Of a stretch of 64,000 nucleotides of DNA, positions 61,271 to 64,000 are shown in pieces (within the stretch, counting starts at the first letter, position 1; each line of letters starts with the position of its first letter). The position numbers and the translations under genes are program-made. Source of the DNA: Rebecca billardiae RCC1528 (lineage: Eukaryota; Protista; Haptophyta); NCBI GenBank assembly GCA_965240325.2, contig OZ251233.1:1674001-1738000 (forward strand). Direction: 5' to 3'. The notes beneath the pieces are model-generated. The model was not told where the DNA came from. It saw nothing but the letters and a program-made list of their open reading frames with translations, and did not search any database.

Positions 61271-64000
61271 ATGTACAACATGCCGCCGCCGGGCGGCTTG
61301 CACCGCGCGCCGAACGCGCCTATCACCCAGGTCTTCAGCACCGTCAACGGCGACAAGGTGTTCCGGCTGCACGAGACAGACGTGGCGATCGTGCGGCCGA
61401 CCGGTGAGCTCATGCTCAACTCGGGCGGCTGGTGCACCCCGCAGACGTTCAAGGCACTGAACGCGGTGCTGCGCGCCTGCCTCCCGGCGTTCTCGCTCGT
61501 GGCCGCTGGACCCATCCAGCACGGCGTGTGGCGCCTCGTCAACGGCCGGCGCTGGGTGTGCGACTTTTATGACGGCCTGATGCTCTCGGGCGCGCACGCG
61601 CCGCTCGGCGTCGACGAGCTCAGCGCCAACTTTGCGCGCGCTGTGCAGCTCTTCGGGTGCGTGGCTGTTCGCGTCGCCGATGCGCGCGTGCCGACACACC
61701 GCTCCCGAGCCCCGCGTGCATGCCTGCTTCCGCCGGCCGCGTGCGCGCGAACACCGCGCCCACGCACGCGCGCGCATGCAACGCGCGGCGCTCCGCTCCG
61801 CGCGCAGGCGCGGCAGCGGCGGGGGCAACCGTGGCGGCGGGCGCGGGGGCGGGGGCAACCGTGGGCGCGGCGGCGGCCGAGGCGGCGCCGGCGCCGACGC
61901 CTCGCGCCCCGCGCGCGGCGTGGGCCGGCTGAGCGAGGCGGAGGTGGAGGGCCTCTTCTCCGAAGCGGACATGGCCGCGGCCAAGGCCGCGGCGAGGGCG
62001 GCGGCGAAGGCGGCGAGCGTGGACGAGAAGGGCGGGCTCAACGGCGCGGAGGCGACGCAGTCGAATGGCGTGCCGAGCGCCGACGGCGCCGCGGGCGCGG
62101 CCGACGGATCGAGCGGCGCCGCGGGCGGCGCCGCGCCCGGCGCGCCGGGTGGCGAGCCCTCGACCGGAGCCGCAGCCGCGGAGGCGGACGAGGATGCTGC
62201 CGACGTGATCAACTTCGACAAGTACGACCAGATCCCGGTGGAGACGTCCGGGGACGAGGTGCCGACGCCGGTGAGTAGCTTCGCCGAGCTCTCGCTGCCC
62301 GCGCAGCTGCTCGCCAACGTCGAGCGCTGCCGCTACTCCAAGCCGACGCCGGTGCAGCAGCACGCTCTGCCGGCGCTTCTTGCAGGCCGCGATCTGATGG
62401 CGTGCGCGCAGACGGGCTCGGGCAAGACCGCCGCGTTCCTGCTGCCCACGCTGACGCACCTGCTCGCCGGCGGCCTGGGCGGCGCGTCAGGCGGGGCGGC
62501 CGCGCCCGCCGCCGCCGCCGCCGAGCCGGCCGCGCCCGCCGCGCCCGCTGCCGACGGCGCGCCGGCCGCGGCCGCGCCCGCGCCAGGCGGTGCGCCCGCG
62601 CCGGGCGGCCGGCGGCAGGCTTGCGAACCGCCTGCGCTCGTGCTCGCGCCGACGCGCGAGCTCGCGACGCAGATCCTGCTCGAGGCCGCCAAGTTCTCGC
62701 ACCGCACGCCGGTCACGCCGCTCTGCGTGTACGGCGGCGCCGACCTGCGCGCGCAGATCACGCAGCTCGAGCGCGGCTGCGGCCTCCTCGTCGCCACGCC
62801 CGGGCGGCTCACCGACCTGGTCGAACGGCGCGCCGTCTCACTGCGCGGCGTGAAGCACCTCGTGCTGGACGAGGCGGACCGGATGCTCGACATGGGGTTC
62901 GAGCCGCAGATCCGGCGGATCGTGGAGAAGGAGGGCATGCCCACGCCCGCCACGGGGCGGCAGACCCTCATGTTCAGCGCCACCTTCCCCAAGGAGATCC
63001 AACGGCTCGCGTCGTCCTTCTTGCAGCGGTATGTTTTCTTGGCCGTCGGGCGCGTCGGCTCGACGACCGACCTGATCACGCAGAAGGTGCTGTGGTGCGA
63101 GGAGCCGGACAAGCGGCGCGTGCTGTGCGAGCAGCTGCGCGCCACCGAGGGCCGCACGATCGTCTTCGTCGAGACCAAGCGCGCCGCCGACGCGCTGCAG
63201 CACTTCCTGAGCGGCTCGGGCTTCCCCGCGACGAGCATCCACGGCGACCGCACGCAGCGGGAGCGCGAGGCGGCGCTCCACGCGTTCCGCCGCGGCAAGG
63301 CGCCGGTGCTCGTCGCCACCGACGTGGCGGCGCGCGGGCTGGACATCCCGCTCTGCGTGCACGTGATCAACTACGAGCTGCCCCGCGAGATCTCCTCCTA
63401 CGTCCACCGCATCGGCCGGACCGGCCGGATTGGCAAGCTGGGCGTCGCGACTTCGCTCTTCAACGGGACCAACGCGGGCATCGCGCGCGAGCTCGTCGCG
63501 CTGCTCAACGAGGCGCAGCAGGAGGTGCCGCCGTGGCTGGCGAAGGCGGGCGCGGGCGGCTCCCGCGGCGGCGGCGCGCGCGGCGGGCGCGGCGGCGGCC
63601 AGTTCGGCGGGCGCGACTACCGCGCCAACGTCGGCCGGCAGACTTGGAATGCTGCCGGCGGGCGTGGCGGCATGCGCAACGCGGGCCACGCGATGGCGGG
63701 CCCGATGCTCGGCATGCAGCCGTTCCCCATGCACTTTGGCGCCGCGCAGATGTACGGCCCCGGGCCGATGATGGGCGGCGCGCCGCCGTCCGGCGGGCTG
63801 CCGGGCGGCGGCGGGCCGGGCGGCGGGCCGGGCGGCGGCGGCGGGCCGGGTGGCGGCGCGGGCGGCGGCGGCATGGGCGGCGGCGCCATGATGGGTGGCG
63901 GCATGGGCGCCCCGCTGGGCATGAACCCGGCGCAGTTCGAGCAGCTGCTTGCCGCGCAGATGGCGGCGAACCCGGTGCGCGCGCGCAGCTTCTCCCCGCG
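61271..64000 (+). CDS. DED1: DEAD-box RNA helicase of the DDX3/DED1 subfamily with extra N-terminal domain; intron 61657-61807; 3' end outside window
   Basis: After splicing: RGG box, [73 protein letters not shown]. The ORF track misses the helicase exon because it runs off the window. Confidence 0.95.

Follow-up and report, generated by a model that had tools for sequence, protein, structure and literature searches.

A Kyano_Gp96-type domain of a phage protein family at the N-terminus of a haptophyte DDX3/Ded1 helicase

DEAD-box helicases of the DDX3/Ded1 subfamily are central regulators of translation initiation and of ribonucleoprotein (RNP) granules, and their N-termini are normally treated as disordered. 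Another described system that bears on the present locus is ALYREF, which starts with a UAP56-binding motif (UBM; peptide ADKMDMSLDDIIK, residues 2-14, PMC4661793) and has the layout UBM, Arg-rich/RGG region and RNA recognition motif (RRM) (PMC5095910). Here, we describe a gene of the haptophyte Rebecca billardiae RCC1528, located at the end of a 64,000-nucleotide stretch of contig OZ251233.1 (positions 1,674,001 to 1,738,000, hereafter the window, whose own numbering is used below), in which a DDX3/Ded1-type helicase core is preceded by a folded N-terminal domain related to the phage protein family Kyano_Gp96 (Pfam PF23790). Our literature searches returned no paper on Kyano_Gp96/PF23790 and nothing relevant on haptophyte DDX3. 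The two exons seen in the window were used as separate queries throughout.

Exon 1 (61271..61656, forward strand) starts with an ATG at 61271, the first start codon downstream of a stop, and translates into a 128-residue N-terminal segment (128 codons to 61654 plus two bases, i.e., phase 2). An exhaustive HMMER search with exon 1 alone against 1.84 billion protein representatives yielded 144 relatives at E<=1e-3 and 18 at E<=1e-10, and AlphaFold, run on a 123-row alignment, gave a predicted local distance difference test score (pLDDT) >90 over residues 20-106, so that the segment is a real domain and not a chance open reading frame (ORF). The domain core covers residues 19-107 (61325..61591, forward strand), as supported by this prediction, by profile alignment and by the conserved positions. 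Its predicted topology consists of four strands, a helix (residues 57-70) and four further strands, followed by a low-confidence helix at residues 115-124. Fifteen columns are conserved in both the haptophyte and the phage groups, and all of them are kept in the window (L33, H34, T36, G45, L49, G52, G53, W54, T56, T59, N64, G85, W87, F99 and D101). The exon 1 ORF is matched by the family hidden Markov model (HMM) with an E-value of 3.7e-35 and is the sole copy within the window.

Exon 1 alone matches PF23790 with an E-value of 0.0058, and the same family is indicated by language-model features of the exon; matches were also obtained to two PHROG families of unknown function (phrog_554 and phrog_19389). 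In the wider set, PF23790 is matched by 72 of the 144 relatives, with a best E-value of 9.3e-11. Using tblastn, exon 1 retrieved hypothetical phage proteins, namely gp08 of Burkholderia phage Bp-AMP1 (31.7% identity over 79% of the query) and proteins of Caulobacter phages. When 15 haptophyte helicase domains were aligned with 40 phage-type domains by hhalign, the two groups matched with a probability of 99.8% (E 1.5e-29, 93 columns). At the structural level, Foldseek against BFVD returned nine matches at E<=1e-3 (probability 1.00, E down to 5.6e-5), all of them uncharacterised phage proteins, including those of Synechococcus virus S-PRM1, Prochlorococcus phage Syn33 and Caulobacter phage CcrSwift, while the ESM Atlas gave a Kyano_Gp96 cluster (template modelling scores of 0.63/0.75, root-mean-square deviation of 1.7 over 90 residues) together with two clusters of chlorophyte hypothetical proteins. 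As judged from sequence and predicted fold, the exon 1 domain belongs to the Kyano_Gp96 superfamily, otherwise known only from hypothetical small proteins of phages (marine cyanophages, pelagiphage and phages of Caulobacter and Burkholderia). The original prediction, made from the DNA letters alone, had described exon 1 as a compact segment resembling small uncharacterised phage proteins; indeed, the 128-residue translation contains all the motifs quoted there, the LHxTxI...GGWxTxxT...W...FxDG pattern given with them corresponds to the conserved columns of the family, and the hhalign, PF23790 and BFVD results all agree on the resemblance.

Searches of the PDB by sequence, with the single protein and with a profile, gave nothing meaningful, and the weak rows obtained in structure comparisons (Sm proteins, bunyavirus cap-binding domains, propeller blades and pieces of phage spikes) were rejected as noise. 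Note that four long multi-repeat bacterial proteins (P0030, P0058, P0092 and P0115), in which the first half of the domain is matched five to seven times in tandem, were not taken as true members since this half only was matched. In addition, one protein of the relative set carries a Listeria-Bacteroides repeat (Flg_new), and alignments to half of the domain model were also obtained for DUF8033 phage proteins. A possible architecture of the domain is a pair of hairpin-plus-helix halves that are related to repeats of this sort.

The helicase part of the gene is of a well-known kind. Exon 2 matches Pfam DEAD (E 8.8e-44) and Helicase_C (E 2e-32), and motifs Q, I, Ia, Ib, II (DEAD), III (SAT), IV, V and VI were all located and are intact. 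The best 120 helicase matches are all named DDX3X, Ded1 or RH37 (49-62% identity), and a tree of the helicase core places the gene within a haptophyte clade among DDX3X/Ded1/RH37 proteins. With DDX3X, Ded1 and plant RH37 as its closest relatives (52-62% identity) and all motifs intact, the assignment of the helicase to the DDX3/Ded1 type, as first proposed for this DNA, is upheld.

The fusion is not particular to Rebecca billardiae. The closest relative of the N-terminal domain (P0001, 58% identity) is found in one ORF on Logan contig L002, which reads through the domain, an RGG box, a GRLSEAEVE linker and the Q-motif region up to an interrupting intron, and the two window exons align colinearly to its residues 54-149 and 271-318. 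Uninterrupted ORFs that contain the domain and a full helicase are P0006 (859 aa), P0160 (781 aa) and P0163 (870 aa). Fused proteins also occur in Pavlovales sp. CCMP2436 (P0002, KAJ1616882.1) and in a metagenome-assembled genome (MAG) of Prymnesium sp. (P0172, SGPRY_008753), P0168-P0171 are likewise full-length, and Emiliania huxleyi EMIHUDRAFT_230649 (P0178) carries the domain. The P0178 gene model is without about 15 residues of the domain core (the SGGWxT stretch), a gap that is probably a mis-predicted intron in the annotation. In the helicase-core tree, which was built with FastTree and whose support values are to be taken with some caution, the window gene and all fused proteins fall into one 13-row clade with a support of 99; five domain-less members of this clade begin at internal positions and look like 5′-truncated gene calls. 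The domain is found in none of the ~110 DDX3/Ded1/RH37 proteins from plants, fungi, animals and other protists of the same match list. The survey across algae that had been suggested with the fusion therefore finds it in Pavlovales, Prymnesium and Emiliania, and because it is common to these lineages and confined within one clade, the fusion is old. These data indicate that it arose once, at or before the split between Pavlovophyceae and Prymnesiophyceae, and the fused gene appears to be the haptophyte DDX3 orthologue.

Within the window, the gene lies in DNA of 72-76% GC. The coding frames of exon 1 and exon 2 differ, so that an intron is needed between them, and the inferred one (61657..61807, forward strand, 151 nt, GT-AG, phase 2, with borders GG/GTGCGT and CGCGCAG/G) is the best GT-AG pair in an enumeration of splice pairs; it relies on the sequence, on frame analysis and on the colinearity with P0001. 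A phase-2 intron joining exon 1 in frame to the RGG region and the helicase core had been part of the original prediction and is thus recovered, the exact 61656/61808 junction being the most plausible one. Moreover, any in-frame alternative splice pair whose donor lies beyond 61590 keeps the domain whole. When exon 2 is translated from 61809, an RGG box is followed by a linker, by the FDKYDxIPVExSG motif, by a complete DEAD-box core and by a C-terminal tail. By translation, the RGG/RG-rich box occupies the start of the exon (61808..61892, forward strand, as are all features that follow), and the order of domain then RGG is also seen in P0001, P0002, P0003 and P0008. The linker motif GRLSEAEVE (61923..61949) likewise stands after the RGG boxes of the two closest relatives, P0001 and P0002, and the FDKYDxIPVExSG motif ahead of the DDX3/Ded1 core (62214..62252), here aligned to P0001, is present in all fused relatives. 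The DEAD-box helicase core, with motifs Q to VI, extends over 62280..63428 according to the Pfam matches and the motif positions. Its spacer between motifs I and Ia (62430..62648, 73 residues) carries an Ala/Pro-rich insert that, in a comparison with P0006, exceeds the length seen in relatives by ~40 residues; this insert represents either low-complexity sequence specific to the lineage or an in-frame intron that went unrecognised. Finally, translation and composition define a Gly/Ala/Pro/Met-rich C-terminal tail with RGG repeats (63429..64000), and the gene continues past the window end.

On the phage side, a search with a phage-type member finds 136 phage records, 120 of which are Synechococcus phages; the remainder comprises phages of Caulobacter, Burkholderia and Pelagibacter, a record named Cyanophage and an uncultured phage. 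Among the records listed, nearly all are annotated as hypothetical and one is labelled as a putative transcription regulator without evidence. The corresponding genes sit within blocks of small early-type or hyperplastic-region genes. Ten loci were found in 185,579 bacterial and archaeal species genomes, all of them on MAG contigs of scattered phyla, which fits phage or prophage DNA. Viral contigs gave distant phage-type copies only, with nothing closer than 29-48% identity, and a giant-virus route was rejected on this basis. As an example, a contig of 347,857 bp (IMGVR_UViG_3300012582_000004, L019), from a jumbo phage or giant virus, has one distant domain copy. The commonest uncultured phage-type form (P0035 and ~35 relatives) is ~230 residues long and combines the domain with a helical C-terminal part; it is predicted with high confidence (AlphaFold pLDDT 93.7) and has invariant C156, C159, H172 and H176, which probably form a zinc site. 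For a 226-residue phage member, Foldseek gave no PDB match and the best VIA-align Z was 4.4.

Helicases are not the only eukaryotic proteins that carry the domain. The domain tree is divided, with a support of 95, between 65 phage-type rows on one side and 58 rows on the other, the latter comprising all helicase-fused copies and the other eukaryote-type proteins; note that this tree comes from a short alignment and a quick search, and that its main split alone is trustworthy. In 12 cluster representatives, an ALYREF-like layout is seen: an SLDDII-type motif, which corresponds to the UBM of ALYREF, lies within residues 3-13 (one of them, which has an upstream extension, has it at residue 49) and is followed in many by RGG repeats and then by the domain. 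Examples are Chromera velia Cvel_15949 (P0048), Tetrabaena socialis TSOC_013760 (P0032) and Polytomella parva A0A7S0VMK7 (P0297), the first two of which have RGG repeats after SLDDII, and all three are candidate non-canonical mRNA export adaptors. When the N-terminus of P0133 was compared with PDB sequences for an ALYREF-type motif, low-complexity RG matches were the only ones obtained. Six representatives have two RBBP6/Mpe1-type CCHC knuckles (zf-CCHC_2), some with a UBA-like match; two begin with a Stm1_N-like NAFALL start, at a sub-threshold E-value of 1e-3; and other eukaryotic partners of the domain are a RING finger and ankyrin repeats. With these ALYREF-like, zinc-knuckle and Stm1-like architectures, the domain emerges as a module that recurs among RNP-associated proteins of Haptista, Chlorophyta and a chromerid. 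As a side observation, P0012, P0015, P0017, P0018, P0020 and P0021 share a conserved N-terminal region ahead of the domain, covered by no Pfam match, and mostly have the two CCHC knuckles in addition; in P0017 (contig L005), neither Pfam nor the knuckle motif was matched.

What the domain does in the helicase can be approached through the company it keeps. We propose that it would act as an auxiliary RNA- or RNP-binding (targeting) module and that, together with the adjacent RGG box, it would load the helicase core onto certain RNAs or RNP partners or tether it there. This proposal draws on the domain context, namely that the domain repeatedly adjoins RGG boxes and zinc knuckles and occupies the RRM position in ALYREF-like proteins, and on the GGWxTxxT stretch running into the helix which, with the second invariant Trp, resembles a phosphate/base-binding site; our confidence that the domain cooperates with the RGG box in this manner is about evenly balanced. 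Several points weigh against it. The exon 1 score for PF23790 (17.2 bits) lies below the gathering threshold of 27 bits, no solved structure was matched by Foldseek against the PDB, and the best VIA-align Z for the window domain was 4.5, with no match above noise; with no solved structural relative, the function cannot be deduced from the fold. The junction at 61656/61808 is a prediction from sequence and relatives, and an ATG of the helicase frame, at 61680, lies inside the inferred intron in a frame that is open from 61581. In addition, the net charge of the window domain is ~+2, i.e., not strongly basic, and the UAP56-motif and DEAD-box contexts are just as compatible with contacts of the domain to helicases or other proteins. 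These last two points agree with the main rival reading, less likely than our own, in which the domain is a protein-protein module that would regulate or oligomerise the helicase or dock it onto a partner such as another DEAD-box protein, the ribosome or an export factor; phage versions would hijack a host protein through the same surface. The eukaryotic relatives with a UAP56-binding motif, RING fingers, ankyrin repeats and UBA-like domains are protein-interaction contexts, and the phage copies are among small early or hyperplastic-region genes, which are often aimed at host proteins, in keeping with such docking; however, the regular vicinity of RGG boxes and CCHC knuckles and the RRM position in the ALYREF-like layout speak otherwise, and the Gly-Gly-Trp-x-Thr-x-x-Thr at the helix start with its second invariant Trp would be more like a ligand or phosphate/base site than an interface.

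The same ATG at 61680 could formally start a domain-less helicase, which is an argument for regarding exon 1 as a separate small gene or transcript, with a helicase that starts downstream and a fusion that is an artefact of the gene model. We consider this highly improbable, since in relatives single ORFs run through both the domain and the helicase without interruption, an unspliced exon 1 would run for ~207 more Arg-rich codons, out of frame, to 62276, and the RGG frame is open up to the acceptor of a good GT-AG pair. If this very helicase gene or its lineage had recently captured a phage gene, this would fit with a family that is dominated by and named for phage proteins and that is rare and scattered in bacterial genomes, where the ten loci are all on MAG contigs. 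However, this scenario is largely refuted and retains very little credit: the fusion is common to Pavlovales, Prymnesiales and Isochrysidales, with the fused helicases in one clade; the eukaryotic copies, including the non-helicase architectures of Chlorophyta and Chromera, stand apart from all phage-type copies at the support of 95; the viral contigs provide no close source; and the exon has a host-like GC content and an intron. The captured domain of the original prediction therefore stands in part: hhalign and BFVD bear out the kinship to a phage family, but a capture particular to this helicase is contradicted by the haptophyte-wide fusion, the other algal architectures and the main split of the domain tree. 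The new nucleic-acid or partner specificity suggested there for the helicase would be a plausible role. Extending the RNA/RNP-binding proposal beyond the window gene, we put forward as a tentative and rather unlikely generalisation that the Kyano_Gp96-type domain is an unrecognised RNA/RNP-binding or DEAD-box-coupling module of marine phages and photosynthetic eukaryotes, which would replace the RRM of algal ALYREF-like proteins, would sit on the only DDX3 of haptophytes and, in its phage copies, would disturb host RNA metabolism.

Altogether, an ecologically important algal phylum (coccolithophores, Prymnesium and Pavlovales) has a structured N-terminal domain where DDX3/Ded1 is usually disordered. 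The helicase is of an already known kind, while its structured phage-family N-terminal domain, the phylum-wide conservation of the fusion and the wider use of the domain in algal RNP proteins appear to be undescribed. The domain is without a solved structure, an assigned function or any literature that we found, and it recurs in algal proteins of the export-adaptor-like, zinc-knuckle and RING kinds as well as in the genomes of more than 100 cyanophages. Knowing its binding target would annotate a sizeable family of unknown phage genes and would also show how one lineage rewired a core translation helicase.

Compared with DDX3X, Ded1p and RH37, the haptophyte gene has the same core with motifs Q-VI, the same FDKYDxIPVExSG pre-core motif and the same RG/Gly-rich low-complexity flanks. 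In contrast, it carries a folded domain of ~90 residues in place of a disordered N-terminus and an extra Ala/Pro-rich insert between motifs I and Ia. It also differs in the eIF4E-binding motif, which is typical of the DDX3/Ded1 subfamily without being strictly defining: no YxxxxL-hydrophobic motif was found by a regular expression search of exon 1 and the first 180 residues of exon 2. Given that no canonical eIF4E-binding motif was found ahead of the core, one may speculate that the structured domain replaces part of the usual N-terminal interaction repertoire. The comparison with ALYREF/UIF-type export adaptors concerns a possible role of the domain only, as the window gene itself is not an ALYREF-type adaptor: the algal domain proteins start, like these adaptors, with an SLDDII-type motif and then RGG, but they have the Kyano_Gp96-type domain in the position of the RRM. 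With Kyano_Gp96 itself, the window domain shares the signature RLHxT, G, L, SGGWxTxxT, N, GxW and FxDG as well as the predicted fold. Phage members are small, stand-alone proteins, whereas the window copy is a nuclear, intron-containing eukaryotic exon fused to a helicase. Eukaryotic copies further differ from those of phages by a 4-residue insertion (G80-Q83 in the window numbering) and by Q/L instead of T/K in the helix motif, and many uncultured phage-type copies have a helical C-terminal extension with an invariant Cys-Cys-His-His that the window domain does not have. The window domain is thus better filed as a eukaryotic branch of the Kyano_Gp96 superfamily than as a stand-alone phage protein.

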